DNA of 64,000 nt from Oikopleura dioica (lineage: Eukaryota; Animalia; Chordata), in contig OU015568.1 of NCBI GenBank assembly GCA_907165135.1, positions 5,208,001 through 5,272,000 on the forward strand, written 5' to 3'. Position 1 is the first letter of the stretch. Each line of letters opens with the position of its first letter. Positions 23,801-53,258 of the stretch are shown piece by piece. Under the pieces are notes generated by a model. The model was not told the origin of the DNA. It ran no database searches and worked only from the letters and a program-made list of their open reading frames with translations. Both the position numbers and the translations under genes were made by a program.

Positions 23801-25597
23801 GTTACCACTTCCGTTCTACACCATTTCATCTCTTTCAAGCTATGCTTACCGAGGGCCCTAGCAGTCTTGGTTCCTTTTCCTTCGTATGGGATATTGGCGA
23901 CGGCTTCGAGAAGATCGGCTTTGGAGTAGTAGTCGTTGGGTTTGATTCGGAAAATTGGCTAGAAAACGCGTCAAGGGTGTCAAGAACAAATTTGCTGAAG
24001 AGAAAATTTTGAGCGAGTGTTATGGAGAAAATTTGTAAAACACGTTGAGTCAAAAAGATAACATGCGTGTTTTGGTCGGTGCTTTTTCGATGAATCTGAT
24101 GGGGCGGGAAAAGTTTTAAATGTGTAAGGAGAGAAGTTTACTTACATATTCGTTGAAAGTAATCACACCGACGCGGGTCTTGTTTTCGCCGATAGGGAGC
24201 GACTTGATGAGTCCGATGATGTATTCTCGCACGTACTGAAAAGTGGGGATTAGTGAAAGGCACACCCTTAATTTGGGAGAAGATAAGGATATCTTTTTCT
24301 CGCTCAGGAAGGTTTAATAGTAAGAAATAAGGTAAACAGACGTCAAAAAGTCAAAAATGAGGATTTCTGTCGGACAGACAATTGGATTGTCTGATAGACA
24401 AAAAGCCGTAGAATTTCAAGTTTCATCCAGATATTGTTTATTTTTTCTCAAATGGCTTCATGAAGCAAGGCATCAGCTAAGCGAGAATAAGGGTAGGGAC
24501 TTACGTTGAAGTTCTTGTCCTTGATCGATGAAGAAGAATCGATGACAAAGATAAAGTCCATCTTCATATTAGCTGGGCATCCGTCTCGCATGCAGCATTC
24601 TGGTGCATCCCCAACCCAGTCACCATTTTCGCATCTGTAGTTCGGGTTGTCCGGGATTTTAATCTAAAAAGACAGTCAGGAGCGAAAATTGATTGTGTCT
24701 TACCTTGTAAGGTGATGGACACTGGAAGGTGCACTGGGAGCCGTGGTTGGAGAAATCGGTGCAAGCGGCTTCCATCTGGTGCGGGAGCCACATTTTGCGT
24801 CGGCAACTATTGGTATTGGGATCCATGGTTGTCTGGACGGTAGTTGGTTGCCAAGGCTCGGTGGTGAAGTCCTGAAGATAGCGAGTAAATAAGCATGTTC
24901 AAAAAAGTTTCAAAAAATGAAAACCATAAAAGACTATTGTTGACTGTCGATCTGGACTTTTGGACAATTTTTTAAAAACTGAGCTCTAGAACTTAGAATT
25001 GTCTTTAGGTTAGGGGTCTAGGTGAGTTGACCTTATTGACAAACTTCCAGAACTCTATGTTTACTTACATAATCAGAGTACGATTCAGTATGATCGGTGT
25101 AGTCAACCTCGACAGCGTTGCACTGGGTCCATCCTAAAAAGGTCACGTGAATACCAAAAGCAAGAGCAGAATATACGCGCGTGCATATTAAACGAGCCGC
25201 ATATTCCAACTTCGTAAACAAACTTGCCGTCCAAAACGTGGGTTCGTTCCGTTTTAGAAAAAAAAATTCGTACCTTTGAGAGTTGACTCGAATACTTTGC
25301 AGCTGAGCTCGCAGCAGAAGCTGGTTGACTCGTCGTAGAGCTCGCCGCAGCAGCAGCCCTGGCCGGGGAAGTAGGGCTTGCCAGTTGGGTCGCCAGCAGG
25401 GCAGCAGCCGATTGCGCGGGGACCGATTGTTGGATTCTGAAAGGAAGAAATGAGGAAAATGGCCGAAAAAGGGGGTGTTTTGAGACTTGAAATGATTCGC
25501 TCAATTGCCATTTGAAGCAAAATGGCCAATCTGGACCTCGATTTTGATTAATCCTTCGGGAAGTCGCAAAAAGCTTTACAGGACAAACGGATTTCAT
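20861..25597 (-). CDS. Secreted matrix-type protein: Cys-rich (galaxin/usherin-like) repeat + Thr linker + Sushi/CCP + VWA + furin site + C-terminal domain
   Basis: GCCPAGDPTGKPYFPGQGCCCGELYDESTSFCC; CTDFSNHGSQCTFQCPSPYK...YRCENGDWVGDAPEC (CCP); DFIFVIDSSSSI..NF, KTRVGVITF, IPYEGKGTKTARAL, PNTVLVLTDG, VIVVGVG (VWA, intact MIDAS); RQRR. Mostly GT-AG junctions in phase. 5' end uncertain (25600-25810). Confidence 0.85.
23496..23611. repeat. Foldback element with internal 9-bp (tgtcacgaa) tandem repeats
   Basis: cagtgctgaaaatgtcacgaacgtcacaaatgtcacgaatgtc ... gtgacattcgtgacattcgtgactttttcagtactg; in a long intron of the VWA gene. Confidence 0.75.
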
Positions 25598-28857: not shown

Positions 28858-31800
28858 ATGAAGCTCTTGGGCTTGATTTTAGGTCTAGTTTTGGGCCAAG
28901 ATTGCCCGTTTTATGCAGAAGGAACCAGTGGAAGTTACAAGGTTTATAGGCGGAATGCAGGGAAAAGCGGTAAGGGCGTCAATTTTTATCCTGAAAAACA
29001 GGTGAGTATGCCACTTAAGGACCTACACTCCTGTTCGATGAGGCGGTGGGTGCCATCCTCTCGACCGGTTCTGGCAATTTAGAAATAAAAGACCTTCGAG
29101 GGCAATTTTGGGAAAGCGACTTCACTCGCCAGAAAGAGGTTCGTTAAGGGCCTCCCCTTTCACAAAATAATAGACATAATGTAGTCACATGTGATCACGA
29201 GCACCGAGTACAAACGGAACTCTCTTCAAATTAACTTTGGCGAAAATATTCATTTATCGCTAAATTGCCTCGACACGAGCGCACAACTGGTTCAATTAGC
29301 GGTCGAGAATGGAATGGATAGATTTTGGCTTCGCTTTGCGGCAGGAAAGGGTTAAAAAGACGGACAATGCAAATAGTTCTGGAGGGTTAACAGAAGAGAA
29401 AGACACAAAATGTGTCGACTTTGCTTTAACCGGTTAAAAATCTGTCACAAGAAGTGCCATATTAGTTTCAAATGGTTAAAACGGAAGGATGAGCACAAAA
29501 TGTGCCAAAGATCAAATTTAACCCAATCAAGGCAGCGCGGAAGAAGGTGTTTACGGCGGTGGGGAACAATTTTCCTACTTTAACCTGCGCGGCAAGAGCT
29601 TCCAAATGTTGACCCGCGAGCAAGGCGTCGGCCGTAACGCGTCCGAATTAGGTTTGTTTCAAATTGCCGAGGGAAATCAACTTAACTCCACGTTTGCCTT
29701 TAGATACAATGGTGCATTGCACCTTCTGTGTTTACCGAGTTTAAAATTTCCGAGATTTTGTGGCTTGATCAGCGAAAAAACCAAAATAAAAGGCGGCTAA
29801 ATTTTAACTCCTCAAAGCACGATGGTCAAATCGGTGCCTTAAAGTGACAAAAATGGCCATATGCCGCTCGAGGGTTAAGATTTTCTAGCCGATTTTTAAA
29901 GAAAATAAGTTTGTCGAAGTTTTCGTATTTCGCTGACCTGCCAAAATATCTAGAATTTCAACCCGTCGCTCAATAATGTTCTTTTTCTAGTGAGCTTCGT
30001 GAGCGAACGATGTTGCCGAACAGGTGGCGAGTATCACCATACGTACTGGCCGCAGCCAACGTGCGTAATTTCAGGAAGCCGCCTCAGCTCACCTCCTCCT
30101 CCCTCCGGTTTACGGTGTTGTGTCAATCGCACAATCATTCCGGAGCCGGTTCAAAGTCATTTCTTCCAGAAAAATTACGCGATCGCGCTTTTTATCTGAT
30201 CAAAGACAGGATTTGACAATGAACCCGCTGCGCGAAAATGACCAATTATTTGGTAAAGACGGAAAATGATGCTTTTTCCAAATAATTGGTCATCTTGCGC
30301 CAGCGGGTTAAAGAATAATTTTTCAAGTTTGAGAAAGAAGCTTGAATTTATCCTGGACTTGAATTAAATTCACAACCAAGTTGTTCTACAAACTTGAAAA
30401 GAAAAAAAATAATAATTTTCCGCTGCGCCGCGCGTTACAAATTTTTTCGAAATGAATTTTTGGAAATTTTGTGTAACGTGTGTGTTGCTCCAAAAAGACG
30501 GAGAGAAGTGTTGCTGAGCGGTGAGTACAGGCGGAGCGAGCAGGAATTTTTACATCAACTTCTGGGCACCGCACGGGCTTTGGCATTCTGCTACCGCCAC
30601 GGTACATTCCACCAAACGAGAAAATTTGAAATTCTAAATTTTGACAAAAGTACACACGTCAGTAAATTTCCAGGCAAATTTCAAACTAGCTTAATTTAAG
30701 ATTTTACTGTTATTTCTTTTTTGATCTTAAGGGAACCCACTTCAATATTTTCATAAATTTTTTTATCAAAAATAATGATTAGGAGGTCCTTAATTCATCA
30801 AAAAGAGAGCCAGAAATTTTGACCAATCAGAGGGCGAGAAATTGGAAAAAAGCGCCATCTACCGTAGAAATTTTTCAAAATTGCCTAGGCACGTTATTTC
30901 TTAAATTTATTCATCTCCAACACGCATGTACGTTTTGATAACGCTCTCCCCTTCCTTTTTCATCCTTATCAGTGTCGAATGGCATGAATATTTTTTCCAC
31001 CACGTGACTCGAAAAGCGATAGAAAAGCCCGGTAAAAAGCATGACGAGTACTCGGTCTTCGATTTGACGCAAGAAGAATTTCACGAGTTTGAATTCCATG
31101 TTTCGAATCCAAAACAGGAGCTGCTGAAATTCGAAATGGACTTTGGACAGGGTAAGTGCGGTAGTGCTCGGTTCTGGAAACGAAGGAAACCCCAATTCCA
31201 ACTCAGCCAATGTCTGCTGAGCCGCTTTTCGTGTCCGATTTCAAATCCGCTTTTCCTATCTAGCCTATCCGTTTCTCTATCCCTTTTTGCTGCAACAAGA
31301 CTGGTCTTGTATTGGGAAAGTAGAAGATAAACGATTCAATTCGGTAGACTCCATTAACTCAGTGATACCCTTAAGACTACGCGGACACAGTTTCAAAACT
31401 CGCCCTTTCATACGGCAAGCAAAACAAGCTTCCTTCCTGGGTCACCACTGGCTCTATCGTCGGACTTCAAGGCGGAACCGACCGGGTTCTAGAAATCATC
31501 GAAGACAGCCAAAAAATCGGCGACATCGACATTCATGGCGTTTGGATCCAGGACTGGTCTGGGCAGATTTTCACGGACTTTGGAGACCGAGTGTTTTGGA
31601 ACTGGCAGTGGAATAAGACACAATATCCGAGCTTAGGAAAATGGGCGGGAAATTTAAAAAGGCTTCGATGGCGCGAAATTTTTTTGAGACGAAAAATGTC
31701 TAAAATACGCAATTAGCGAGTCAAAATTGATTGCTCGGAAGAAGCACTTTTTGACCAACCATTTTTAACCCATTCGCGCCCGGCTGATTAGATACAATCC

Positions 31801-34630
31801 TCCCGGAAATGGCCGAAAAGGGCGTCTACTTTCTAAATTACCTCAATCCGCATCTCCTCAACACACCCACCTCTGATCTCTACCTTTACGGCGAAGAACA
31901 TGGCTACTTTGTCAAGGTTTGAAGAAAACTCTCAGCTGGAAATCAGAAATTCGAAAATTCGCGTAAAAATCACGTGGTGAATTTTGACAAAGTGTTCACA
32001 CTGTGCGGCGCGTTTATTATTGGAATTTTGATTTTCAGTGTTGTCATAAGGGCACGTAAGCGAGTTTCGTGAAAATTACAATTTTTCGATTTTTGAGTCG
32101 AAATTCTTCAAAGAATCTGTCGGAACTCACTGCAAAATCATAAAAACGCGAACTCGAACAATCATTTAACTAGAAATCTCAAAAATAAGCACTGGCCAAT
32201 CAGAAATATGGATTTTCAAAGTTGACCAATCAGAGCAATTTAAACAGCGCCATCCATCGGAAAAAAAGAAAAGATCGACAATTAAGCTTGTTTTTCTCAA
32301 GTTTGAGTTTTTGATTCAAAAATTCGATATTCGAGTCGAAAAAACAAGCTTTCAGAATTCGCTTCAAACGTGCCCCGCGAAAACAACCTCGCGAACAAAA
32401 TTTTCGGCATATTTGCTCGAACCTCTTAACCCTTGAGCGCGTCTCTTTCACCCCATTTAGAACAAAACCACTGGACAGACGTTGGAACAAGTGTTTGGTT
32501 TCGAGCCGTTTTTGGTCGTCACTGTCGACCTCAGGTTCTAGCGGTTCCAGCGAGTTGAGATTTCGCACGTACGCGAGAGCGAAACCAGCCGCAGCGCTTT
32601 GTTATCTCTTTGCGTTTTTGCTTTTTCGCGAATTGGTGATTTTCGAATTTTTTTGAATATTTTACTGGAACCGTGGTTAAAGCAATCCAGAGGCCGCGGA
32701 GTGGTTTAAAAACGAAGTCATCATCAAAAATACCATCGAGTTTGGATTCAAGGGTGAGAGCTTTGAATAAATGCTCGGTTTTGAATAAATTAAGGGTGGA
32801 TGGCGGACTTTGGAGAGTACCTCCCTTATTCTGATGATGTTTTGTTCTTTGACGGATCAACAGGAAATGGACTAATAACGCGGTGATACCCTTAATTTGG
32901 CTTGAATCGAGCTGATTTTCAAGCTGTAATTTCTCGAAAATTTTTCATAGTGATACCCTTATTTTATCTTCACAAAAGATTTTGGAAACCGTTGTTAATG
33001 TTTTTGCGAAGCGCAAAATCAGCAAAGAAATCAAGTTAAGGATATCTCTACCATAAGAATTTCGCAATTGAGTCCACGAAAAGGCAAAGACTGGCACAAT
33101 AAGTATAGCGAAAAGTGGGCAAATTTGAATATGCAGGTAAGATCCCCTCGGTTTCGGATGACAATCCCTCGTCGCCGCAGTTTTTGTTAAGGCTCTATCC
33201 TCTTTCGACTACATTTTTTCGCCTAAAGATCAGAGGCGGGAGATCCTTAATGAAACATCATCATTGCGTTTTCCGGTTGTGAATAAGTCGACCGGGGACT
33301 TAAGGGAATCGCACCCGGAAAACGCGGCTTTTCCGTATGCATTTCGCACTCTTTCCCACGTCCATGATGAATACTGGAATTGACGGTACAACCTTAAGGC
33401 CCTCGTGGAAACTGGCACGCTTGGGGATTGCTTTTTCTTCTCCCGAGCGGGCTGGAATGGCATGCGGGCAAGTTCAACTGTCGCATGGGCTGGCGATCAA
33501 AACGTAGACTTCTCCTATGGCGATGGTTTATTCACGACAATTCCAGCCGCCTTAAGGTACCCCCTCTCTTCTATCCGCTAATGCGGGTACATTAAAACCA
33601 CTTAAGCTTGGGAGCAAGCGGATTTGGCATAACACACTTCGATATTGGCGGTTACACTGGTATGCCGCCGCTGATTAGAACCGAGGTGATATACCCTTAA
33701 TCCCTCAACCCTCTTCATCCTGCTTTAAGGAGCTCTTCCTACGATCCGCTGAGGCAGCGATTTTCACGCCGATCATGAGAACGCACGAGGGAAATCGACC
33801 GTTTGAAGGATTCCAGTACTATTGCAACATTTGCAGCAAGAAACTCTTCGGCCGATTGGTCAAGGTAAGCATAAGCATGGTGACCCCTTTAACTATTTTT
33901 AAGGTCCACAACGTGCTAGAGAAGTATATCGACTTTCTAATGGGCGAGAACGCTGAGCAGGGTAAACCGATCCAGGTAAGTCTCAAAATGGATTTTGGAT
34001 TCGCTCGCGCCGAGAGAAAAAAAAAGTGTTGAAACGGGTTAATTCTAGAGACCAATGATCTGGCTGGAAGACAAGGAAGAACTCAGATCGGTTGATACTC
34101 AGTACTACTTTGGAGATGATATGGTAGTTGCGCCGGTTTTGAGGGGAGGCATGGAGAAACATACGCTTTATATTCCAGAGGTAAGGGATTGAAAATTAAC
34201 CTGTTGTTGCGGAGTATCCAATTTTTTGGCAAGACTGATTTCGAGATCAATTTCTGGTGTTTTCGAGATCAGAAACTAATTTGCCAAAGGTTTGGTCAGA
34301 ACGACAAAACGGGTTAATAGGAACTTAACCTGTTGGAATTCAAAATCGCTTAACCCATTTAGGGAACCTGGGTTTGGGTTTGGAACTCAAACGTGCAAGT
34401 GACGGGCCCAGGAAAGGATCAAGCGATTCCCCTACGGTGATCCATTCGCTCATTTCATAATCGAAGAAATTTTATTCGCGATCCCGGGGAATCACTGATC
34501 CCCCCAATTTTAAGTGAGCAACTTCGAAATCGAATCCCCGATCGGCTATCCCGCCGCCTTCTATCGGCTTGGCTCAGCTTTTCAGGAGAGTGAATTGATC
34601 CCACTGGCTTTAATAAGTACCGTACCGTGA
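28858..34630 (+). CDS. yihQ: Secreted GH31 sulfoquinovosidase-like alpha-glycosidase (YihQ-type)
   Basis: Signal peptide MKLLGLILGLVLGQ; VYGGGEQFSYFNLRGK, EQGVGRN, GGEYHHTYWPQPT, LPSWVTTGSIVGLQGGT, GVWIQDWSG, DRVFWNWQWN..YP, FLNYLNP, VDLSNPEAAEWF, GWMADFGEYLP (nucleophile), AWAGDQNVD (acid/base), THFDIGGYT, FTPIMRTHEGNRP, VAPVL, PIGYPAAFYR. All are collinear with E. coli YihQ as recalled. The symbol denotes the bacterial homolog. 3' end 34630 or 34679. Confidence 0.92.
30222..30309. mobile_element. 88-bp hairpin MITE of the (T)AACCC...GGGTTA(A) family
   Basis: aacccgctgcgcgaaaatgaccaattatttgg ... ccaaataattggtcatcttgcgccagcgggtt; intronic in the GH31 gene. Related ends at ~29340-29530, ~29800-29880, ~34820-35020 and ~43905-44190. 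Confidence 0.75.
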
Positions 34631-37485: not shown

Positions 37486-40400
37486 GTGAGAAAAGTGAGG
37501 GCGAATTAGCGCTTGACAAGATTTGTCACTGACAGGAGCTTATTTAGACGCGATTTAGCCATTCTCGTTCTACACCGCGCTTAATCCTCGCAGCTTGTGA
37601 CGAGCGACCGGAAGTTTTTGGGCTCAATCAGCAGTTTTTTGTTCAAATGTACAAAATCGGCTATCGAAAACTACGATTTTGCGGTTTCAAAAACATGGTT
37701 GGACTCATTCGATGAATTTTTAAGTAGAAATACCTTAATATTTTTGACGCATAAGGAGGTAGACCCTTAAATGGAAATACTTGTTTTTAGAGGGGGTGAA
37801 CCCTTAATTTTTTCTTCAAAAATTATTCAGTGCTTCTTTTTCGTCTACCCAAACTTTGCATGAAAAAAAACAACGTGCGGGTAGGAATTATCCCCCGATC
37901 TGGGGAATAAATTCAACCCGTGCGCGCGTTCATGCGCTTTGTCCGTCGCATTTTTTGGATTAATTGAACCTCTTTGCGCATTCATTTTCGAACCTCAAAA
38001 ATGCTGCTCCATGTCCCGGCGGTAGAATCGGCCCAAAATAGACCACCACAAGCTTGAAATTATTTTCCGAAAATTTTGTTTTATTCTTGACATACACCCT
38101 TAATTTTAAAATTATAAGAAAGACAATTTTTGAATAATTTCCGCTGCGAAAACGTGAACTGCTGCGGGAGAATTATCTCCCGTGAGCAAATAATTTATCC
38201 TGTCGGGTTATACAAACGCGCCAAAAATTTGGTGAATGTTATGGAAATAGTCTGCTGATAGACGGAATTATTTAGAAAGGGGTTCACTTCGGCAATTAAC
38301 AAACTTGGGCAGGGGCAAGCCATAATTAACAAGCTGATTAAAGGTGGGCTCGCTGAATTTTTTTCAATTAACGAATTTTATGTCCAGATAAAAATGGAAG
38401 GATCGACCGTAAAGAGTTAAAAAAAAGAGGACCTCCCGCTGAGTTTTCGATAAGGCTCGGTTTAGAAGGACGGGTGGTGGCTCCTCTATCGAAGATTCTG
38501 GCGGCAATTTGCGGTGGTCACCATGCCATCAAGCTAATCATTTTACTGTCGTCCTTACATTTTTATGGTTGACGAAAAGTAGGCCGTACTCATTACCAAC
38601 CCAGCAAAATAAAAGTCTACTTGTCAAATAAAGGAAATTTGAAAAAAATTAACCTTGGGGATACCCTTAAGTCAATGTCTAAATCAAAACCGAAGGAAAA
38701 ATTAAGGGTGTGTAGGAAAGTTCGCGCAAAAAGGGGTCCTTATTTTAACTGGAAAATAAGGGGGTAACCAAGTTAAAATGAGGACCTATGATTAATGGAA
38801 GGGGTCACCTTAGGAAGAATATTTTTTTCTTTGTTTCTTCTTACCTTATGAATTATATCAGCATAAAGAAGTCGTTTCGTAAGTAATAAGAATAGTTGTT
38901 ATTGAATAGAAGTTATTTTTCAAATGGTAAATCTAAAAAAAGAATTGTTAGTTTCTCTTTCTTTCTCTTCCTCAATTTTTTTCTTCATTTTTAAAATTCT
39001 AGCACATTTCCGCGCGGCGACGGAATGGCAACTGACCGACTTCATTTTCAGTTCCTGCCCCGCTGCTGGCTCTAAGCTCTGAGAGTCGGCCAAAGGGGAA
39101 AATTGATTTTCAGAAAGAGGATTTGGGAATTTTCGCAGATTTACAAAGAGAGAAGTACGGGGAAGAAACTGGGATAATCCCATCCGTTTCGGCGGTAATC
39201 GGAATACATGTGAGAAAAATCATACGCCCGGGTCCTTAGAAGATGAATTTTTGGACCAATTTAAAAGGCAATTTATAAGATTGACACCCTTATTTTTGAA
39301 TAAACTTTCTTCAAAATAGGCTTATTGAAAAAATTACAGGACTGTCTTTTGGAAAAGTTAAGGGTATCGTGAAGTTATTGAGAGTTTTTGAACCTGTTAA
39401 AAACTCATTTTTCATGGCCTACTCCCTTATTTCTTGAGCAAATAAAGAAACGAATCGAAAAATGGCTTATATTTAGGATTTTTCTTTTGAATTAAGGACC
39501 TACCATCATCCGAAAAGAAAGAAATAAATTAATTTTAAATCAATCAAAATCAAAGCTTACCCCCTTAGAGCACGCCTGAGAATTCGGAATCTGTCAACTC
39601 GTTATAATATCTAACCGCGATAAGGTCAAGTGACTTGAAATAAATCAACGACATGCAACTACTCATCCCTTCGAAATTTTCAATTCTAGTGCTTCATTAT
39701 TCATCGTTATTTTAACCATAAATAGCGATTATTGATGATTCGGCGCGAGGGATAACGTGGTATCGTGAGTAGATACGACAAGTTATCGAATCCTGCTCTA
39801 AACAATTTTTCCGTCGCATTTTTTCCCAGCGCGTGCGAGCGGGTTAAGTTGATTTGAGGAATATGTAAATTTCATTTTAAGAATTTGTTGACATTATTGA
39901 ATAAGGAAGGATCGGCGAAAACGGATAAATTTGATAAAAAAAACGGTTAGAAACTCCCTAAGGGTATCGACTCACAGTTCAGACTCAACAAGGATGTTCT
40001 TTAAGAAAGAACTGACATTCAGTAAAGCCAAGAGTTACTGTCATTTTTGACTCAAAAATCAAGTTCAAAGCAATTTTCGTAGTTTCTTTTCGGAAACTCG
40101 AAAATGATGAGTTTTGTAGTTAAAAATAGTTATTTTTCAATATCGAAGGGTATATCCTTAATTTTCGAAATAGCGGCAAAAAGGCAGTTTTTTTCATTTC
40201 GGCAGAAAGAAAGCAGCTCGCCGAGGCAAGTTTGAAATAGATCTGATTTAGTGCAGTACTTGAGTGCTAAGAAGAAGCTCCCTGGCTTAACTTGGCGGAT
40301 CTGATTGCTCCCTTTTGGGCAAATTCTTTGCTCGAATGACCGACGATTCACAAAATCCGAAATGCTTTCAGATTCTTGTTCATCCAATCAGATTTGCAGC

Positions 40401-41905
40401 TGCTCAAAAATATCGAAAATCGCCGAAACTCAAAATCTTTCTTTCAATTTACTATCAAAATCTGTTTTCTCGTTGTTTTTTCTTAAGGGTATCCGTATCT
40501 AACTCGCTGAAATTGTCAATTAAGAACTTAGCTTTAAAATCAGTGTTGACGCCCTTAGGAAAAAACAATTCGTTACCCCCTTATTTGTGCTACAGAAACA
40601 CAACACCGCGTATTTACTGAAGAAAACTGAATTACCAGCTTTTTTCTTAAGGGTATCCCTCCTTTAATAATATCAACCGAATTGTTTTTCTTCGAGCAGG
40701 AAAATCACTGTCTTACCCTTAAGATAAAACACTTGGTTACCCCCTTATTTACGCGTCAAAACTCAAAAGAGTTACGTATATGCCCCCACTTATCTCCAAA
40801 ATACTTCACACTCCAAATTACTCAAAACTCCAATTATCGCCGCTCGAAACAATTAGTAAAATCTTAAGGAGAGTGTCCGAGAAAATGTGTTGTAAGTTGA
40901 CAATCAAGACATGCGGTAATTCGTTATTACATTTTTTTGTTACAGAAGTACACGAGTAAATTTCCCCCGCCGCAAATTCAAAACGTAACGTTTTGTTTTT
41001 TATGTAGACAAATTTTTATCCAGCGCTAAGGGGGTAACAACTGTGGATAATTAAGAGAGGGGTCATCTAAAAGAAAATAATTCAAAAAATCTTTTCAAAA
41101 TAAGACATTTATCTACAATAATTTGTTCGAAAAAAATTCTTGAGACTGAGCTCTTTCAACGCGAATTAAGGGTATACCCTAAAATTTTTTCGAAATTTTG
41201 AAGGTTCATTAGAAAGAAAACGTCTTTATCTAAGGATATCTTCAAGAAAATATAAGTTTTATTAAGGGTATCAACCATGAAATGACTGATTTGTTGTTTT
41301 TGATTAAGGGCATGCATCAAGAAATGCAATTTATTGCTATAGAAAATTTTTAACGGAATTTCTTTATGAAAGAAAATTATGAATTTAAGGGTATCTATCT
41401 ATAAAAGGCGATTAAATCTGCAAAAACTCAATAAGAAAGGGATATCCTTAAGAAACTCCTTCTAATCTCGCGTTGTGTACCCCATATAATTCCGATTACC
41501 GTCGATTTGCAAAAATTAAACCCGTGACCGCGCAGATATGGCTCTAAAAATCGACGTACCTTTTAGAGTAAAACGCTAGAATCAGCCTTATCTCTTCGAT
41601 AAAACAAAATTCTAGAAAGAAATTCTAAAGCCTAAAGATTTTTTAAAAGGTTTCTTCGTTTTTCTTCTCCTAAAAAAGCCTGATTACAAACTGATGGTTA
41701 CAAACTCGAGCTTCTGAGTTGATTGACGAGTTAAGGATCTCTACTGTTTTGTTTCTCCACCTGATAAGTTTAAAAAAGATAAAAGGATCTTCGTTCTCTT
41801 GATTTAAAAAAAGAAGGGTTGAAGCCGTAAATTACGCTACGGTTCGTTTTTCTTTCGTGCGTCAAGGTCAGATCAACACAGGGTTAGGCACTAAGGGAGT
41901 CGACG

Positions 41906-44900
41906 CTAAACGAGTACGCTCAAAGTTGCCTCAGCGGGAGACGGCTCCAGCGCGCCACCGAGCGGCAGCGCCCAGCGAAAATCTTCGCCATTTTTTTTTT
42001 CTCGCTGCCACGCGGCGGCGCTACTTTGAAAAACATGAGAGCGAGGGAGTAGCTCGAGAGCGACCCCTCGCCAGGTCAAGAACTGAGGAATTTCAGATGC
42101 AAAGGGATGAAAAAGGCGATCAGAAAACAGATCAAGCAGATGAGCAGTTAATTGGAGGAGGGAGACGAAACTACTGATAAAAATTTTTTCAAAGGAAATC
42201 ATTTTGATTTGAACATCATAAAACACCTCTAATTTCGTTGGTATCGTATTTTTTCTCGATAAAGATTCCTTGATTTCCCGCAATAAATAGATCAAATAAT
42301 GGAACAATTTTTTTCATGTTCGTGACGAATATGTTTCTCAAGCATTAATTTTAAACTTATGACTGAAAAAGTTTGCTAACCTTCACTAAAAATTGTGATA
42401 ACCAACAACGTGGATTTCTCCAAAAGTCGCGGTCTTAAATTTCGCACATTAATCTATCATTAACCACATGTGATGTAACTTTTCGCTTTAGTCTTTAAAA
42501 ATCTTCGAATTTCAAGATTAAAAAAATCGGGCCTATGTTAATCCGGTGGTAGTCTTATGGTGCTTGTAATAAAACACCGATATGAAAAAGTTTTTTACAA
42601 TGCTATTGTAAAAAAAGCGCCTGATGGACATTTTCTGCCTTCCTTTTTTTTCTTCTGAATTTTGGACAATTTTGACCCGTGTGCAAGCTTGTGTATTTCC
42701 TGCTTCGTAGTCCGCGATGAGCTCATTCGTAAAAAGAGAGAAAGAGCGCCTGCCACAAAAGGATTATGTTTACTCGGGTGACTGTGTGTTGGCCGCAGTT
42801 TCCTCACCGCCAATCGTTTTAACCGGTTGTTACATGGAAACGCATCCCCTGCCAAGAACTTGTTCCAGAACTTTTTCCGACAAAAAGTTTATTTTTCAGC
42901 TGCAAGTTGAATAAATTCAATAAATTAAGAAATAGGCTATTTATGATCCATAAATCAGCTTCTTCTTTCAAATCGCCGTTTTCTGCTCTTTTGCGATGAT
43001 GACACTAAAAACGCGATTTAGTGAAATTTATGACGCATTCGACTCGAATTTTGTCAAAATGTTTTTAGACATTTGAAAATTCAAGCTCTAGAAAGCAAGA
43101 TAAAGACCTCATCTGTCTTATGGCAAGATAAAATAAGGGACTTCCTATCTTAATTCTATAAGAAATATCAATTTTTAAATCGGGCTATATCGATGGCTAT
43201 GCCCTTAGGAAAGCTATTATACGGTATGATATCTTTCCTAAGGGCGTAGCCATCGATATACCTAGGGGGTGAACGGTGAAAAAATTGATTTTTTTATCAT
43301 CCTCTAATAGATCTACATGAGAAAATTGGCGTTTATGATGGAAAACAGCGTTTTTTTAATTTACAATTATTGAATTAAATGTTTTTTATGATGTGTTTTA
43401 TATATATACATCGATTCAAATTAGTTTTCTAAACTTTTAATTTTGCTCATTTTTTCACTGTTCACCCCCTAGATATACCCCTATCTAAAAGAGGATATTT
43501 CTCATAGAAATAAGAAAGGAAGACCCTTATTTTATACCTTATTATTTATACCTTTCACTTTTGACGATAATACTTGGAAGCGGGCGAACAATGTCTTCTG
43601 GAATCGGGCCACTGACTGGTCCCAAATAAGAGCTTCTAGCGGTCGATCCGTCAGGCGAACTCTCGTCGCTGAAAAAAACACACGTCAGTTGAAAGACTGT
43701 AATTGAAGAAAAACGCTACCTGTAGAGATTAACATGAATGTGAGACGGATTATAACAGACTTGTTTCACCGAGTTCTAAAAAGATCATCAAAAGGGTTTG
43801 AAATTGAGAGCCGGGCTTACTTTTAACTCGCGGTTGTATTTGATCTTGTTCTGCGTCTTCCAGAAGATGAACTTTTCATAAAGATAAAAATATATTGGGG
43901 AAAAAATTTTAACCCCCTGTCGCGCAGAAACCAAGTTTTCGACAAAAATATAATTTTTGGTAAACTACGCCTTTTGTTGTTTTATGCAAAAGGTTAAAAA
44001 TAGGTTAAAATTCTGTTGTTCAAGAATGCTTTCTCAAAATTTAACCCATCGACGCAGCATGACCAATCTTTTGTCCGATGCTTATTTAATTTCTGCGGCT
44101 TATCTGACACCTTTCAAACAAGCCTTAATTTTTGATTTGCCCTTTTTTGATTTGCCAAAAAATTAGTGAAGGCGCGCAAATAGGTTAAAAATTCATGAAG
44201 GAAAAAATTTTTATCCCTTCCGAAACGCTGATAAAAGCAAAAACGAAGCCCAAGGTGAACATGATTCGGCTCTTTCTTGAGGCCGAGAATTATGAGATCT
44301 AGTTGCTTTACTAAAAGCTCGGAACGTGGCCGGAAATTCCGCGAAACATTGAAATCTCAAAAAGCCTTGCCTGACCTTTAATTAGGCTCAAATCGCGCAG
44401 AATTTTGGACGGGACGGGAATACTTTTGTGGAGAGAAACGCTTTAGACAGGACTCCATTTCTTGATACATGAGATTTTGAAGCAATTTCAAGAAAAACCT
44501 TAAGGGTATCACCAAAATAAAAAGATTTCCGAAATCCGGTCGCGGTTCCGTGAAGTTTTCAATATTTATTGAAATTCTTTTTTAACGATTTTCTGAAAGA
44601 AATTTTTTTGTTAGTGATACCCTTAAAATTTTTCTCTAGAATAAGGGTATAACCCTTTATTCTCCAAATTAAAGGAACCTTACAATTTCAAGCTAAATTT
44701 CAAGCTTTATTTTACGCCACAGTTACGAGTTCTTTCAAGAGTTCTTTCCTTCTTACTTTTTATCTCTGTGGATACCCTTAGCCGTTTATCGAATTGAAAA
44801 TGAGTAAATACAAAAACCATAATGACACAATCTGCTCTAGGGTCCTCACTGATAAGAGCGCTAATACTGCCCGTCCAGCGCTTTAAAATTAAAATGGAGT

Positions 44901-45156
44901 CCTTCCTGTATGGGTTCTGAAGCATAAGCTTTTCCAGCCAAAACAAACCGATGAGACCTGAAAGAAGATAATAGCTAGAACACGTGACTCGCGGTGGAAG
45001 CGCGCTTTTTCGTGAGAAAGAATTTAATTCAAAGTGGAATTCCGAACGTGGTGATGACCCGCTCTTAGATCTTGCTTGTTGCTCGGATTCTTGCGATTCT
45101 TCGAGACATGGGGAAGGCCTTTCAATCTTCAAGGAGGGGCCAAGAACAAGGAGCAA
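41906..45156 (-). CDS. Probable multi-exon gene of unknown function
   Basis: In-phase GT-AG chain TQNKIKYNRELK|NSVKQVCYNPSHIHVNLY|SDESSPDGSTARSSYLGPVSGPIPEDIVRPLPSIIVK|RDAFPCNNRLKRLA|LIADYEAGNTQACTRVKIVQNSEEKKGRQKMSIRRFFYNSI (43880-42605). Further open segments at 44707-45156 and 41906-42100. Ends unknown. Confidence 0.5.
43186..43260. repeat. 75-bp hairpin element (28-bp arms)
   Basis: tatatcgatggctatgcccttaggaaag ... ctttcctaagggcgtagccatcgatata. Confidence 0.85.
43263..43471. mobile_element. 209-bp hAT-type MITE with 8-bp TSD
   Basis: TIR TAGGGGGTGAAC(G/A)GTGAAAAAA at both ends; identical 8-bp flanks GATATACC at 43255-43262 and 43472-43479. Confidence 0.88.
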
Positions 45157-45199
45157 TTAAGCCAAATAGTTTTCATCGAAATTCACGCTCAAAATTTAG

Positions 45200-45400
45200 C
45201 TGCGTGCGGCTTTTTCAATATAATTGAAACTAAATAAGCCGCGCCTTTTTTTTATTCGAAAAAGCCGCGGTTATAATTTTAATTGCGGTTTTTTTGACTT
45301 TCTTTTGAAAAAACTGCGGCTTCTTTTTAAAAGCCGCTTCGCGGCTTCGAAAAAAAATATTTTTTTTTTATTTTTCTGAAAAGCCGCAAGCGGCTTTTTT
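45200..45400. repeat. Array of AAGCCGC/GCGGCTT mini-palindromes in poly-A/T spacers
   Basis: gcggctt, aagccgc, aagccgcttcgcggcttc and aagccgcaagcggctt recur several times within 200 bp. Confidence 0.7.
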
Positions 45401-45920
45401 AATGAAAATAAAATTTTTAAGGTAAAATGGATTGAAATTTGAAATTTTGATTGGGATTTTTCCCATTCCCTTTTTCGTATTTTTCAAATTTATGAAAATG
45501 AGAGTTTTGTGCCGCGTATTTTTCAGTCGGTCCACGTTGAACAGGCTTAGTCAGTTGCCTTCTAACTCTTTTTGGAATTCAAAGCCCGCGACCTGGCGAC
45601 TTTCCATCCGATTTTCTCGAGAAGGGTCACCGCCACCAGTTCCTTCAAAATAAACCCGAGAAGCCTTTTTCTTACCTGCGAGGAAGAATAACACGCCGAG
45701 GGACAAGGAGATGCAGATGACGGAGTTTAATTTGTTGAATTCGGGCCGGTTGGAGTGGGAAAGGACCAAAAGGGTGCGAAAGCTTTTTGGAGAGGCGACT
45801 CCGCTTGCTTTCAAAAATGGTCAGAAAAAATTTGAAATCAAAAAACTAAAAAATTTTTGGAAAAATCGCTTGAAAACGACAATTTGCGGAAAAAAATAAA
45901 TAAGAAAAAAAGTTTCGCCT

Positions 45921-46290
45921 AAAAAATAAGGACTTCCTCCAGAAAAAGGATATTTTTTCCAGATTTTTATATACAAATTTAATAAAGTGACACCCTTACT
46001 TCAAATCAGAGCTCAAACACTCATCATGGATGAGTCATCTAGGCTCGGCATTACCAAGTCGGCAACCTGTGTAGAAACCTGACTCAGGCTTGTGAAGACA
46101 TCAGAGAAGCGAAGCAGGACCCTGACTCAGATTTCTACACAGGTTGCCGAGCCGAGATGATTCATCATAGTCTATGATTCATAGATGAGCCTTTCGGCGC
46201 ATATTTGAAGTAAGGGTATCACTTTATTAAATTTTTATATTAAAATCTGGGGACAAACATCCTGATTTCTCAGGAAAGTCCTTATTTTTT
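45921..46290. mobile_element. Composite symmetric element: ~85-bp outer inverted arms enclosing TGASTCA repeats and a CCTGASTCAGG-family core (46059-46150)
   Basis: aaaaaataaggacttcc...aaagtgacacccttacttcaaat / atttgaagtaagggtatcacttt...ggaaagtccttatttttt; core tcggcaacctgtgtagaaacctgactcagg...ctgactcagatttctacacaggttgccga. Confidence 0.85.
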
Positions 46291-47260
46291 CAACAAAGCA
46301 TATGACAGACCGACTTGATTAATTTTTAATCGACTGGAAATGCCATTTTGTCGCCCTTATTTTTCTCCCTAACCGACCTCGGAAACGTCTTTATTTTGAC
46401 TCCTGAAATTATTCATCCCCCATTTGTGCAATAGACGGGATGAAAAACAGACAGGTAGTGGTGCAACTCTACTATTCCACTAAGACTGTCGCGGTACTTG
46501 AGCTTGAGCCCTCGTGCCCGTATAAGTATTTAATTGAAACGCTCTTTCTATTCTATGGTTATTTTTGGAAGTTGGCGAAAAGGGGGAGATCACGTGACTT
46601 TCTTTTTAGAAAAGTACAAGGCGCTTTTTCAAAGAAATTTTTTAAAAAATGGAAAAATGATTTTTTTTTCGCTTTTTTGTTTTTTTTTTGCGTTGTTTAA
46701 ATTAGGTCATAAAAGAAATGCTTGAAAAACGAAACAGTTCAAAACGCCGTGTTTTGGCTTTGTTTTGAGCTGGCTCCTAGCGGAGCCGAGCTGAGCGATT
46801 AGACTGCGCGGCCTTGTTTGTCCAAAAGCACCTCTCTAATTACCCAATACAACGGCACTCGAAATAACGACGCCAAGATCGCATGATAGTACGCGCTTCT
46901 ATTACTGTACTTTTAAAAGACAGGGAGTTCTTTAGTGGTTAGTATCGTGCTCCTCCAAAGTTTTGATAAAAAATTTTGAAAATCTTTCGCGAATTTTCTT
47001 TCAAAAAAAGGGGAAAACATCAATTTAAATGAGGTTTCCCATCGTTTTCTACCTTTGTATAGAGACACCCATATTTATTTTATGAAATGAAAGGCTGAAT
47101 CTTAGTTTTGAAGAAGAGGGGGCACGAATCGACCAAATACGACGATCCTGGCCAAAATTTTGGTCAAATTCAAGCCCTATCCGATGTCCGCGGTAGGCCA
47201 ATTTAAATTTCAGAATGGTCAATTTTTCTCTAGAAAAAGAGTCTTTCTGACCGTTTCCTC

Positions 47261-47644
47261 TTGTTTCCGGCCTTGAGCCAGGCGCTTCTACCGCCATTTT
47301 TTCGTCTTTTTTATCTGGCTTTGTTCTATCTTCACTGTAGCTCTGACTGTTTCAGTCTCCCTCTCTTACTCAGTAGTCGAGTACTACAAATGCTCGCCGG
47401 TTGCCCAGAAAAAAAGTGCAACTGCGCTGATGGAACCTGTCGAAATGAATATTCTAGCGCGCCAATTGCCAAAAGATTAATTAATGAACCAATTTCTTCC
47501 TACTCTCTTTTGCAAAGAAAAGTTCTTGAAAAAAAAAAGTTGGAAAATGAAAAACGTCGAAATGAATGGGACAGCCGACACTTAGTTCGGTATTCATTTA
47601 TTTTTCAGAAAGTGGAAAGCTTGAGCAGTTTTTCGAGGAGGTGA
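47261..47644 (+). CDS. Possible coding exon(s), frame ambiguous
   Basis: Two frames read plausibly: ARRFYRHFFVFFIWLCSIFTVALTVSVSLSYSVVEYY (TM-like) or MLAGCPEKKCNCADGTCRNE...KKLENEKRRNEW. No linkage established. Confidence 0.25.
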   Translation: MFPALSQALLPPFFRLFYLALFYLHCSSDCFSLPLLLSSRVLQMLAGCPEKKCNCADGTCRNEYSSAPIAKRLINEPISSYSLLQRKVLEKKKLENEKRRNEWDSRHLVRYSFIFQKVESLSSFSRR

Positions 47645-49123
47645 CAGGATGTCCTCAAAAGTAAGGAGCAACAGATTTGAAGAAACATCATTCTTGTAAA
47701 TTGACAGAAAACTAAGTCATTTATATTTAATCAATTACTCTATCAACTCACTTTAAAAATAACCAAATATGAGGAAGCATTTCATTTATTTATAAAATCA
47801 AAATAACGAATCTTATTCGCATAAGCATAAATTATGCTTGTGATGTCATTAAATTATGCTGCATAATTCTACCTTTTATCAAGATACTAAATTTAAACAT
47901 TTAACTCCAAATTACGATGTCAGTTTTCAAAACGTAATGGATCTCAATGAGATCATCTCATTTTAAGTCTAGGTTCGTACAGTAAAACCAGTACATCATA
48001 TCTAGTTCGAATGGTTTTTAGTACCAATTAACTGTCGTCGGCATTTAAACGCTCAGATAGTTATCGATGTCGCTGATTTCCTACGGTTTTCAGGAGATCT
48101 GGATATTTTCTATAAGGTTAACATCAAGTCACTTAGTTGTTTTCAAAAGTCGCTGATGAAACCTTACCTTTGATTTTCCATGACAATCAATAAAGAATTC
48201 AAAATCTCTTTTTCATCATAATTAGCTATTAACAGTAATCAGCATTCAAGCGCTCTTTACTGATTTATAACTGTTCTCTTGCATTTTAAGAAATATTCAA
48301 AATTGGTACGCACTTTTATACCTAAGAAAAAGAAAGGTGTGAAATGATAAAAAATCTATTTTCGACCTCTGGTCCCTTGAAAGTCCCGATAGCACAGATG
48401 TGCCAGTCCTCTTTTTTTCTAAAGCAGGAAATACCAAAGGCCCTTTATAAAATTGCGGAAAGGATGACAGGATTGTGGCGTTGAATTGAATCAAAATTTC
48501 GCTTTTCGAATTTTGTTTTGGGCTGGGTCCGTAACTTTTGCGCGTCATCTCGGGCGGCTCTGGGTCCGTTTTATCTCAAACAAAGTGACATGCTCCGGAT
48601 AGACACTTCGAAGCCTTTTTTTGCTGCTTGATAACATCCCACTAAAATACGCATACTGTAAGTAAACGTAGGGCATATACAGTCATGCAAGTTCATTTTC
48701 GTCATGGATTTTTTATGATTTCTTGTGGAAATTTTTGTCTAGAAAAAAGTTCAGACTAATTATTCCAAATCTTAGATCTTCGATTCGAGCATTCGTTAAT
48801 TGGTCTTAAGGGGGTTTGTTCTATAAATAGCGATAAAAAACGCGGCCACGTGCTTAACGAGCCCGATGACGGCATGGGGCGGCACAGGGGGGCTCGTAAG
48901 TGCCTGGCGCGATAACCTTTATCAATTATTTGGCAAACGAGACAATGCAACTTTTAGAAGGCGCCCTGCCGTGCGATAAACCCTCCTCCCAAGTGCCCAA
49001 AGCTTCGAATTGCTCCATCCAATTATTCGATATACATTTTTAACAACAATTTTTATTAGGAAAGTGACACCCTTAATTTATTATTATTTTATTAAAAAGA
49101 TAATTTATTAAAAAAATAAAGAT

Positions 49124-51350
49124 TTAAAAAGAAGCTTCCGTTGTTGGATCTTCAATTCTTTCAAGACCTTCGTTATCATCGACAACTTCTTGAGCCGCTT
49201 GAATCTTATTCGGATTTTTATAAAATTCTACCGCCTCTTCGATTGTTTGCAAAATCGGCCGACCCTAAGAACAAAGAAAATCTAAAAAGCCGCAGAAGAA
49301 AAATCGACCGACCTTCACTTCAGGAAGCAGAAACATGAGCGCGCCGCCGACGATTCCAAAAATGCCAAAAATGAGATAAATGACCAATTGACTTTCTATT
49401 TGGATAATGAAAGGGCTGACGAAACCGCCGATTCTGCCTGTCATTGAGGCGAAACCAATTCCAGTGGAGCGGACTTCTGTTGGGTACAGCTCGCCGGCAT
49501 AGACGTAGATTGCGCAAAAAGCGCCGCTGACAGCGAATTTGCCTAAAAAATTGGTCATTTTTCGGTTATTTTTGGTCAAAAAAGCGCACGAACCGACGAA
49601 AGAAAGCCATCTGACTGCCTCATCCTCCCCCACTTCTGCTAAAATCGCGCAACCAACAGAAACGATTCCTCCAAAAAGCATCAATCCACCCGAACACCAC
49701 TTTCTTCCAACAATATCGAGAGCGAAAGTGACCAAAGAATACCCCAGCAGTTCCATGATTCCATTTATCGTATTGTTCAAGTACAAATTTCCACTGATGC
49801 TGGATACATTGAAGGATAAGCCGTAGTAGGAAAGAACTGTGGAAATGAAGCCAAAACCCATGATTAGGGCAACTTTTCGCATTTCTTTGTGTTTGAGCAA
49901 ATCCAAAATCGTGAACTTCTTCACTTCTGCTTCTTCTTCTCCCTTTTTCTCCTCAACTTTTCGGATCTCTTCTTCCAAATGATTGAGGAACTCATCGTCA
50001 AGGGACTTGTTTGTTTTCTCGGAAAACTCGGTCAGGACCTTCCTCGCTTCTTCATCCAATTTTCTTGAGTACAAAAAGCTCGGTGACTCGGGAAAGAAAG
50101 GCGTGACAACGAGGAAGATCAAGTGAGCCATGGCGACTGCAAAAGTCAATCCTCGCCAATCCGGAAAGAAATACCCGAAGCCGGAGAACATGATGTATCC
50201 CATTGCGTAGTAAACATGACTGGTTGCTCCAGCTACAGATCGTTTCGTTGGGCCGAGAACTTCCAGGGAATAAGCAACGAAAGCGAGCCAGGAAGTATGG
50301 TGGGTTCCGTTGTTGAGGGTTCTATAATTGAAGATGCGGATTGAAATCAAGGAAGATTACCTGAGAATCAAAAAGCCCCACTTGTCCGGCATCAAAGAAT
50401 GAATAAAGAGCAAAACCATTGTTACAACATGCCAAACAAGCAAAGAATTTTTTCTTCCGAATCGATCTGAAAAGCAATGGATGGCATGTTTTAGAGAAAA
50501 AATTGAAAATACTCATTATTTAGGTATCTTTGTTTCCATTTTGATTTTGTCTATTAGAGTTTGAGTTTGTGTTTGTGACTGTATTTTGGATTGCTATTGT
50601 GATTGTGATTGTGAGTTTTTGTATTTGAGATTTCTTGAAACTGAAGTTGTGGAAAGAAATTAAGAACGTTCGAATTTCGTACCTGTGTAAATGCCAGAAA
50701 TGAAAGCGCCGAGCAGAAGGCCAAATAAGCCCATGGCTGTTGACAGAGAGTCAAACCATTCCATTCCGCAGTGCAAAGTAAACTGGGGGACCGCAGTCTC
50801 CCATGGCTCTCCCTTGTCGAACATCAGATTCGTGACATTTTCACGCAGCGATCGGTCATATTCGTAACTCTCGCAAGCGACCCACTCTGATTTTTCTTGT
50901 GCATCTTTAACCAGGCAAGCTTTGAGGCTGTCAAAGCTGGAAGAGTCGCAGCCAGCGACAGTTTCGTTGGAAAAATTGCAATGGAAACAACCGCCATCTT
51001 GGGAAGAATCGAAGTTTTGACAAGATTGAGTATCAGTTGATAGTTCGAAGATTTCGTCGAAAGAGAATTTGTCTGCCAGACCAAGGTGGTCAAAAGCGCT
51101 AGTGCATCGATACGGAGGCTAGCGCAATGGTTAAAAATCGAGGGGCTACAGTAATTGCTTACAGTATATTGCGCGAAAACGGGGTACATCGACATGAATC
51201 CTCCAGCTAACGAAGCTACCCCGCCAACAGCTGTGATTCGGAACTGATACCATGAAAGATGCGGTAGCCGATCCCACACAAGGTCGAAACCACTCTTACT
51301 GTCTGAATCCTCTTTTGTTTTTGCTTAATTTTAAAGATCTTACCTGCCAT
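49124..51350 (-). CDS. SLC22-family (MFS) organic cation/anion transporter-like protein
   Basis: MADSKSGFDLVWDRLPHLSWYQ, Cys-containing first loop, DRFGRK, LEVLGPTKRS, FPESP, LSYYGL, DIVGRK, YAGELYPTEVRSTG, LLPEVKGRPILQTIEE, ...EASF-stop at 49124. Canonical introns. Confidence 0.93.
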
Positions 51351-51625: not shown

Positions 51626-53258
51626 ATGTCGCGAAAAAAGGGCAAAATAAGTGTTGAAAAAGAAGAGATTCCCGCAAAATACTTGACTGGAAATTACTAC
51701 TTTGAGAGCGGGGCATTTACGAAAGGAAAGACCTTCGTGAACAAGTGCAGAATTTGTGAGTAAGTCATCATTTCTGCACTTTTTTTTGCCATATGATAAG
51801 TATTCGTGATTTAATTTTAAAGTGTAATTGCGATAAAATTCTATTGCAACTTTCAATGTTCCAATGGAGAGCCTGCGAATCATGTTTACTGTATGGATTG
51901 TTTGTCGCAGCAAAATTTTGTTCATAAGCCTTAGGGTGGGCAAAATTCTTCATTGAAAAAACACGCGAATACTTGCAAACCCTAGTAGAGGCCAAACTGT
52001 AATTGCAGACAGTTTGATTATCGAATGGATCTTTGTCATCTTTTGATGCAAATTCGCTTCAATTGCTTTTACCTCGAATGCAAGGAATCCCTGACTTTCA
52101 CAAAATTCCTCCAACATTATCAACGCTGCGAATTCGCTCCAACCAGGGGTCTGGATTTTGGCCGAAAATGAAAAGCGAAAGCGAAAATTTTCTGAAAATT
52201 AAAAGCGAAAGCGAAGCGAAGCGAATCAAAATTACCAAAGCGAAAGCGAAGCGAAGCGAAAATTTTTCTCAAAAAGCGAAAAATCGCGAAATCTTTCCCA
52301 ATTCTTTGGAGGCTAAAATTGGCCGAATCGATAGATTATTTCTTTCAAATTCAGCGCTGCTATAGGGTTTACAACTGTAAATTTTCAACTTAAACCCAAA
52401 AAATTTGACTTTTTGACTCCAGGTAGCTTCAAGTGACGAATAAATTTTAATTTAAGACGGATAGAATCCAAAAAATTCACAAATCAGTTGATTTTTGAAT
52501 TATTTTCACACATTTTGTGTTCTGAAAAGTTAAAAAAAATTTTTTTGTGAAAAGCGAAAGCGAAGCGAAGCGAACTGAAATTACTAAAAGCGAAAGCGAA
52601 GCGAAGCGAATTGAAATTACAAAAAGCGAAATCGCTCATGAGCGAAATCGCTAAGCGAATCCAGACCCCTGCTCCAACAGGCCGAGCTCGCTTTCCTGAA
52701 GATCAAGAAGTCATACCAGTGAATGAAGGCAACAAAGAAGCAATAGAAGCTCGTCTTCCTGATGGCTTCGAAAGAGACCTCAACTCCCGAGAAAATGAAC
52801 TGCAATCAACGAGGAAAGAATTTGAGAAAATTTTCAACGAAGAGAAATCGCTATCTGATCATCTGAAGTCAGTTGACAAGAGGATAAGAGATAACTCATT
52901 AAAGACAGAAAATCTTCTGCAGGAAAATGAGGTTCTTACACGAGACAAAACTGAAACTGAGAAGAAGCTAAATATATTAAAAGAAAAGCAAGAATGCATT
53001 CGAGAGAAACCTGCAGCTCCAGCGGCCTATGAAGGTAATAGAATAACAGCTCATTTTTGTATTATTTCAGGACAAGCGGACGAAAACTCCTGCAAAATCT
53101 ATTTTCTTCTCTTCGATACAAATCTTCACCAGCGTTCATGTATCACGACATGCGGCCATTCTTTCTGCAAATCTTGCTTGAACGCTGTCGATCCAAAGAT
53201 CTTCCCGATTTGTAGAACACCATTCAGGATGAATGAAATCATTCAAATTTTCTTATAA
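51626..53258 (+). CDS. RING-like / TRAF-like zinc finger / coiled coil / degenerate C-terminal RING-HC protein (paralog X)
   Basis: MSRKKGKISVEKEEIPAKYL..CRIC|DV..C..HVYCMDC..HK|PNCNC..RFNCFYLECKESLTF..HYQRCEF..|RFPED..coiled coil..CKIYFLLFDTNLHQRSCITTCGHSFCKSCL..IFPICR. Introns ~51763-51822, 51928-51990, 52149-52680 and 53035-53070. Confidence 0.85.
52144..52671. mobile_element. 528-bp hAT-like TIR element that forms an intron of paralog X
   Basis: Perfect 14-bp TIR CAGGGGTCTGGATT / AATCCAGACCCCTG; direct repeat CTCCAAC on both sides (52137-52143, 52672-52678; 8 bp if the terminal G is shared); internal (AAGCG)n arrays at ~52172-52260 and ~52552-52610. Confidence 0.9.

Follow-up and report, generated by a model that had tools for sequence, protein, structure and literature searches.

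A 64,000-nucleotide stretch of the genome of the larvacean Oikopleura dioica, referred to below as the window, carries on its plus strand, at 28858-34630, a gene for a glycoside hydrolase family 31 (GH31) protein related to YihQ, the sulfoquinovosidase (SQase) of Escherichia coli. The window belongs to contig OU015568.1 of assembly GCA_907165135.1 (OKI2018_I69). Adding 5,208,000 to a window position gives the position in that record, and the flanking DNA at 39124-60516 is 100% identical to it. The gene has 20 exons and a coding sequence of 2112 nt, which runs from an ATG at 28858 to a stop codon at 34628-34630 and comprises 703 codons with no internal stop. Its product keeps the eight functional residues of YihQ, lies inside a clade of animal SQases and begins with a signal-peptide-like leader. 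Judged from its sequence, it is most likely a functional SQase of the secretory pathway acting on dietary sulfolipid.

The gene and its exons

The gene was located by tblastn with E. coli YihQ as query (sequence taken from NC_000913). The matches are colinear on the plus strand between 29.5 and 34.6 kb, and no match is found elsewhere in the window. The exon model was built with a protein-to-genome spliced aligner, guided by YihQ, by six animal homologues and by the orthologue of a second larvacean (genomic contig L002; transcripts P0411 and P0422), and doubtful junctions were inspected in the DNA. The features of the gene are as follows.

28858-28969, plus strand: exon 1, with the start codon and the signal-peptide-like leader MKLLGLILGLVLG followed by QDC; the leader is conserved in the orthologue transcripts P0411 and P0422
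29020-29138, plus strand: exon 2, N-terminal beta-sandwich domain, from the L002-guided spliced alignment; joined in frame to exon 1 by a 50-nt GT-AG intron
29185-29350, plus strand: exon 3, from the spliced model
29544-29651, plus strand: exon 4, with the VYGGGEQFSYFNLRG...TREQGVGRN block; 57% identity to YihQ by tblastn; positions 130-161 of NF007746, the NCBIfam YihQ equivalog family
29991-30060, plus strand: exon 5, from YihQ tblastn and the spliced model
30973-31151, plus strand: exons 6a (30973-31003) and 6b (31040-31151), split by a probable 36-nt in-frame GT-AG mini-intron (31004-31039)
31376-31636, plus strand: exon 7, with Gln271 (31468), Gln298 (31549), Arg311 (31588) and Trp314 (31597), equivalent to YihQ Q262, Q288, R301 and W304
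31637-31791, plus strand: GA-AG intron, donor AG followed by GAAAATGG; splicing restores an Asp codon aligned with YihQ ...YPQL-D
31792-31916, plus strand: exon 8, from the spliced model
32461-32534, plus strand: exon 9, from the spliced model
32683-32753, plus strand: exon 10, from YihQ tblastn and the spliced model
32795-32863, plus strand: exon 11, with the catalytic nucleophile Asp421 (32806) in WMADFGEY; the second GA-AG intron (32864-33083) comes after it
33084-33136, plus strand: exon 12, from the spliced model, junction inspected
33399-33556, plus strand: exon 13, with the general acid/base Asp490 (33495) in WAGDQ
33607-33685, plus strand: exon 14, with Tyr526 (33653) in DIGGY, equivalent to YihQ Y508
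33730-33864, plus strand: exon 15, with His555 (33784) in RTHEGN, equivalent to YihQ H537
33904-33975, plus strand: exon 16, from the spliced model
34049-34180, plus strand: exon 17, GH31 C-terminal beta-sandwich, PF21365
34363-34411, plus strand: exon 18; next to it the third GA-AG intron (34412-34514), with donor AG/GAAAGG
34515-34630, plus strand: exon 19 (last), stop codon at 34628-34630; tail without transmembrane or GPI-like (glycosylphosphatidylinositol) segment

An earlier note on this DNA, made by a model from the letters, had proposed an animal SQase at this place and had given positions for seven of these residues (all but His555). Every one of the seven is exact in the spliced model.

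That the gene is an unexpressed or decaying copy is very unlikely. Its 703 codons extend over 20 exons without stop or frameshift, and the catalytic and binding residues are all intact. Such a reading would draw on two facts: no transcript or annotated protein was found for the exact locus, and the introns reach 912 nt, which is unusually long for O. dioica. However, the representative protein library that was searched is clustered at 50% identity, so that the absence of the O. dioica protein from it is uninformative. A search for public annotation near the gene with the open reading frame (ORF) 25103-25597 gave no match, and cluster look-ups of fragment matches returned only metagenome pieces. 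We presume that the O. dioica gene is expressed.

Unusual introns and the orthologue of a second larvacean

Among the 19 introns, 16 are of the GT-AG type and three of the GA-AG type (31637-31791, 32864-33083 and 34412-34514), the latter with a common donor context, AG/GAAA(A)(T/G)GG. For each of these three, no GT donor keeps frame and homology together. O. dioica is known for its frequent GA-AG introns (PMC7072748), and the AG/GAAA donor consensus could serve to find O. dioica genes overlooked by standard predictors. Other solutions were rejected at these places. When only GT-AG introns were allowed, the spliced alignment passed over exon 31792-31916, although its homology is clear, and ran through 20 codons without homology; this solution was dropped after the GA-AG donor had been recognised. 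Between exons 11 and 12, the junctions 32843/33058 and 32843/33073 would delete the LFFDGST stretch, which is conserved in an exon that is uninterrupted in the orthologue, and a donor at 34403 for exon 18 would lose the conserved TGP.

At 31004-31039, an in-frame GT...AG segment of 36 nt is located where homologues and orthologue transcripts have no residues. Because the homologues carry no insertion there, this segment is probably a mini-intron, which would be among the shortest in the gene. Alternatively, it may be an optional insertion: its retention would add 12 residues with nothing else altered.

Exon 7 finds its best match, at 67% identity, in Tara Oceans contigs (L002-L005), in which a compact orthologous gene adjoins genes for MCM7, a trypsin and an amino-acid transporter. 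This gene (L002:8895-11915) occupies about 3 kb and has 12 short introns. A cluster look-up with an exon of the orthologue gave full-length proteins of 743-755 amino acids from contigs of the Joint Genome Institute (JGI) metatranscriptome and Logan collections (P0411/P0422). These transcript contigs align to L002 in exon blocks and therefore the orthologue is transcribed and spliced. End to end, it is 58-59% identical to the O. dioica protein, with the leader and all eight residues in common. Of the 19 introns of O. dioica and the 12 of the L002 orthologue, whose proteins are 59% identical, only one position, the first, is common to both genes; intron turnover between the two larvacean SQase genes is near-complete.

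A 4.1-kb transcript contig (L008:57-4114, Logan SRR27980861), colinear with L002:5836-11932, contains two complete ORFs, one for the amino-acid transporter (513 amino acids) and, 257 nt further on, one for the SQase (752 amino acids). This arrangement suggests an operon-type bicistronic transcript in the second larvacean. No such amino-acid transporter is found upstream of the SQase gene in the O. dioica window. The second gene differs from that of O. dioica by its compactness, by its apparent co-transcription with the upstream transporter and by a C-terminal extension ending in -DEL.

Family, active-site residues and origin

In a 13-sequence MAFFT alignment, Q271, Q298, R311, W314, D421, D490, Y526 and H555 of the O. 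dioica protein align, within ungapped conserved blocks, with YihQ Q262, Q288, R301, W304, D405, D472, Y508 and H537. The columns of Asp421 and Asp490 are invariant in 43 sequences. The sulfonate-binding triad Arg301/Trp304/Tyr508 is kept as Arg311, Trp314 and Tyr526, and the Gln262/Gln288 pair as Gln271 (in GLQGG) and Gln298 (in WIQDW), not as the Lys/Glu variant. SmoI of Agrobacterium tumefaciens has a Lys/Glu pair where YihQ and the O. dioica protein have Gln/Gln (bioRxiv 10.64898/2026.02.11.705467). The earlier note had recognised a YihQ-type GH31 enzyme with the QQRWY set and both catalytic Asp residues, and had made this reading depend, in part, on the set aligning in a proper structural alignment; in the multiple sequence alignment the residues do align with those of YihQ, which bears the assignment out at the level of sequence. 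At the column of YihQ Y508, one Lytechinus copy, one Branchiostoma copy and Orchesella have Phe, and O. dioica keeps Tyr.

Sequence comparisons agree with this assignment. Full-length blastp gives 40% identity to YihQ over 646 residues (E = 7e-147, 437 bits), as compared with 22% identity to the E. coli GH31 xylosidase YicI (E = 3e-28, 113 bits). Exon 7 (87 amino acids) matches only six PDB sequences, which are those of the SQases of E. coli, A. tumefaciens, Eubacterium rectale (6PNR) and Bacillus megaterium (8R56). Eight exon pieces have NF007746 as their best or only family; they are colinear and span its positions 130-633, and their scores total about 313 bits, a sum that covers about half of the protein and is to be read beside a whole-protein cutoff of 553. 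With a local hidden Markov model of 14 bacterial SQases, the scores are 580 bits for the O. dioica protein, 590 for the orthologue and 196 for YicI. The YicI/MalA-type GH31 enzymes are not its best match: NF007940 matches only one of its exons, and weakly, and identity to YicI is low. Its alignment with YihQ and animal SQases over the full length follows the GH31 architecture, with an N-terminal beta-sandwich, a (beta/alpha)8 catalytic domain and a C-terminal beta-sandwich. Pfam recognises PF21365 on exon 17 and, weakly, PF13802 on exon 4. There is one catalytic domain, as seen in the alignment of the O. dioica protein and by Pfam on the orthologue.

The orthologue reaches 634 bits with NF007746 (cutoff 553), against 137 and 94 bits with other GH31 models of the YicI/MalA type (cutoffs 606 and 800). 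An AlphaFold2 model of P0411 (mean predicted local distance difference test score, pLDDT, 88; predicted template-modelling score, pTM, 0.90) superposes on 6PNR, 8R56, 5AED and 5OHS with target-normalised TM scores of 0.93-0.95 and a root-mean-square deviation of about 2.0-2.5 Å. The next GH31 structures come at E about 1e-46, after a gap of some 30 orders of magnitude in E-value. The SQases matched by exon 7, namely A. tumefaciens SmoI (5OHS/7OFX) and those of E. rectale and B. megaterium, are thus also those on which the orthologue model superposes. By its transcription, family score and predicted fold, the orthologue supports the O. dioica protein by proxy, not directly.

The O. dioica protein resembles E. 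coli YihQ (PDB 5AED/5OHT) in identity, in the eight functional residues and in the length and order of its three domains. However, the bacterial enzyme lacks a signal peptide, is located in the cytoplasm and is a product of the yih sulfoglycolysis operon. The O. dioica gene, in contrast, specifies a signal-peptide-like leader, is split by 19 introns and has no sulfoglycolysis genes near it in the 64-kb window.

The closest full-length relatives are animal proteins, as found by a HMMER search with exon 7 among 1.84 billion representatives and by a word-index search with a sea-urchin homologue. They are named "sulfoquinovosidase-like" at NCBI and come from a springtail, brine shrimp, limpet, scallop, lobster, barnacle, echinoderms, hemichordates, amphioxus, a brachiopod and a bryozoan. 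The O. dioica protein shares with such proteins (Branchiostoma, Ptychodera, echinoderms, molluscs, crustaceans) one clade, 37-43% identity, an N-terminal leader, a single GH31 domain and the key residues. Two maximum-likelihood trees were computed, one with 70 rows (LG+G4) and one with 42 rows (LG+C20+F+G4). In both of them, the O. dioica protein and that of the second larvacean fall inside the animal clade with 100/100 support. This clade is sister to a bacterial clade containing YihQ and is distant from the YicI outgroup. The O. dioica protein is therefore an animal SQase in the sense of Uchida et al. (2026), being placed in the metazoan clade with the key residues, a single PF01055-type domain and a signal-peptide-like leader.

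Within the animal clade, the larvacean pair groups with protostomes (99/98), a position that is unexpected for a chordate, and, unlike other animal SQases, it has a very long stem branch of 1.7 substitutions per site. Its union with deuterostomes is not rejected by the approximately unbiased (AU) test (p = 0.23), and the best non-larvacean blastp matches are hemichordates, a crinoid and amphioxus. The protostome grouping probably reflects long-branch attraction, and we read the sequences as pointing to vertical inheritance with long-branch distortion, not to a recent bacterial transfer.

It is extremely unlikely that the gene is a bacterial contaminant or was recently acquired from bacteria by horizontal transfer, an origin that has been proposed in bdelloid rotifers. 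Identity to bacterial SQases (38-41%) about equals identity to other animals, which would fit a bacterial origin. In contrast, the protein stands inside the animal clade at 100/100 and not among bacteria, and an orthologue is present in the second larvacean. Moreover, contamination is excluded by 19 spliceosomal introns, some of the O. dioica GA-AG type, in a chromosome-scale O. dioica record. The earlier note had taken the gene for an animal one, and rightly so.

That note had regarded an animal enzyme as surprising, sulfoquinovose breakdown being held to be mainly microbial. This premise is out of date. The "sulfoquinovosidase-like" names at NCBI precede the present work, as does a preprint of February 2026, in which Uchida et al. 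describe an "animal SQase" from nine phyla and 65 species, with Branchiostoma as the representative of Chordata (bioRxiv 10.64898/2026.02.11.705467). According to the same authors, most of these proteins have signal peptides and are predicted to be secreted, seven key residues are kept, expression is in digestive organs, and the family occurs mainly in aquatic feeders on algae and detritus. They found no downstream sulfoquinovose pathway in the giant clam, had already proposed secreted digestive SQases and an animal role in marine sulfur cycling, and credit Speciale et al. (2016) with having seen animal homologues before. A 2025 study of marine SQases has bacteria and algae as its scope. Tunicates are absent from the text and supplements of Uchida et al. 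that were examined, the supplements carrying no species list, and a literature search combining sulfoquinovose terms with Oikopleura or tunicates returned no relevant paper. Hence, the O. dioica SQase is a tunicate (larvacean) addition to an animal family already described, not the first animal SQase.

Proposed function and genomic neighbourhood

The leader MKLLGLILGLVLG, placed before QDC, is basic at its N-terminus, contains a hydrophobic core of 11 residues (mean Kyte-Doolittle value 2.75) and has V and G at -3 and -1, ahead of Gln14. Composition and hydropathy thus agree with the signal peptide announced in the earlier note. No other hydrophobic segment of transmembrane strength is found in the O. 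dioica protein, and the short C-terminus leaves no room for a GPI signal; the protein has no GPI or transmembrane tail of the kind present in certain chordate and echinoderm members. Three N-glycosylation sequons are present.

With these features, and by analogy with the characterized enzymes, the protein is probably a native SQase of the metazoan family, a retaining GH31 alpha-glycosidase that would enter the secretory pathway via its signal peptide and cleave dietary sulfoquinovosides. As in YihQ, Asp421 would attack the anomeric carbon of an alpha-sulfoquinovoside, with Asp490 as general acid/base. Arg311, Trp314 and Tyr526 would bind the sulfonate at C6, and the sugar hydroxyls would be read by the two glutamines, Gln271 and Gln298. 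Sulfoquinovose would in this way be freed from sulfoquinovosyl glycerol or from sulfoquinovosyl diacylglycerol (SQDG) supplied by the phytoplankton and cyanobacteria on which the animal feeds. While the glycerol or lipid moiety would be retained, the sulfoquinovose itself would most likely be excreted.

A true SQase could also act inside cells, in lysosomes or endosomes of the gut epithelium, or be retained in the endoplasmic reticulum (ER) or Golgi, instead of working in the gut lumen. We consider this unlikely, but it has arguments of its own. A signal peptide indicates ER entry only, and lysosomal enzymes, for example acid alpha-glucosidase, occur among the other GH31 members of animals. 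In addition, P0411 and P0422 have a C-terminal extension of about 40 residues ending in -TDEL/-IDEL, which resembles an ER-retrieval signal. However, the O. dioica protein ends in ...LALISTVP, with neither this extension nor a transmembrane or GPI segment, and in other animals digestive-organ expression and predicted secretion (bioRxiv 10.64898/2026.02.11.705467) favor an exported enzyme.

It is quite improbable that this member of the SQase clade has another substrate in the animal, for example another anionic 6-substituted alpha-glucoside. The Phe that replaces Tyr508 in some animal members hints at tolerance at the sulfonate-binding position, and no biochemical assay of any animal SQase was found in the literature searched. 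Nevertheless, the O. dioica protein keeps Q-Q-R-W-Y together with D/D/H. Even sulfofucoside, the C4 epimer, is not a substrate of bacterial SQases (bioRxiv 10.1101/2023.08.01.551581), and the distribution of the family among algal and detritus feeders (bioRxiv 10.64898/2026.02.11.705467) also fits sulfoquinovosides.

Several points weigh against a secreted dietary SQase and call for caution. Besides the want of an assayed animal enzyme and the protostome grouping on a long stem, no transcript or annotated protein was retrieved for the exact O. dioica locus, the exon model being computed from homology. The least secure parts of this model are the 36-nt mini-intron, the three introns of the GA-AG type and some of the acceptor sites chosen. 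The signal peptide was recognised by eye, from composition and hydropathy, and the structure was predicted for the orthologue P0411, not for the O. dioica protein. Finally, a tblastn search with YihO, YihP, YihR, YihS, YihT and YihU found no sulfoquinovose catabolic gene in the 64-kb window.

The concept of animal SQases is unchanged; the value of the present case lies in larvacean ecology, in the position of tunicates next to vertebrates and in the tractability of O. dioica. It may be, and we offer this tentatively, that this is the first tunicate SQase, that vertebrates lost an enzyme which the lineage nearest to them retained, and that, if active, the O. dioica enzyme feeds bacterial sulfoglycolysis. 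Few grazers of picophytoplankton, which is rich in SQDG, are as abundant as larvaceans. They process a large share of the small phytoplankton and export material as pellets and houses. With an active enzyme, free sulfoquinovose would pass from them into their faecal pellets and the houses that they discard, from which it would reach bacterial sulfoglycolysis on sinking particles. O. dioica can be cultured, with a 5-day life cycle, and could be the first animal for a genetic test of SQase function. Expression, localisation and knock-down studies are therefore feasible, and animal sulfolipid cleavage is directly testable.

Around the gene, recognizable features are few. A Pfam scan of 20 long ORFs of the window left 18 without a match, including all those between 19 and 48 kb. 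One exception is a weak RING-finger match at 52611-53258. The other is an exon on the minus strand at 49265-50350, which belongs to a major facilitator superfamily (MFS), organic-cation-transporter-like gene, identical to OKI2018_I69.PAR.g9887; the ORF is 95% identical to an O. dioica OKI2018_I69 protein, and it is the genomic locus of that protein that matches window 39124-60516 at 100%. Located 15 kb downstream, it is the recognizable gene nearest to the SQase gene, and several O. dioica paralogues exist at 48-57% identity. The public gene table leaves the region 39124-49000 (L006:11394-21393), about 10 kb, without a gene, an unusual gap in a genome as compact as that of O. dioica. A tRNA gene is found on the minus strand at 6456-6537 (Rfam RF00005, 60.7 bits).

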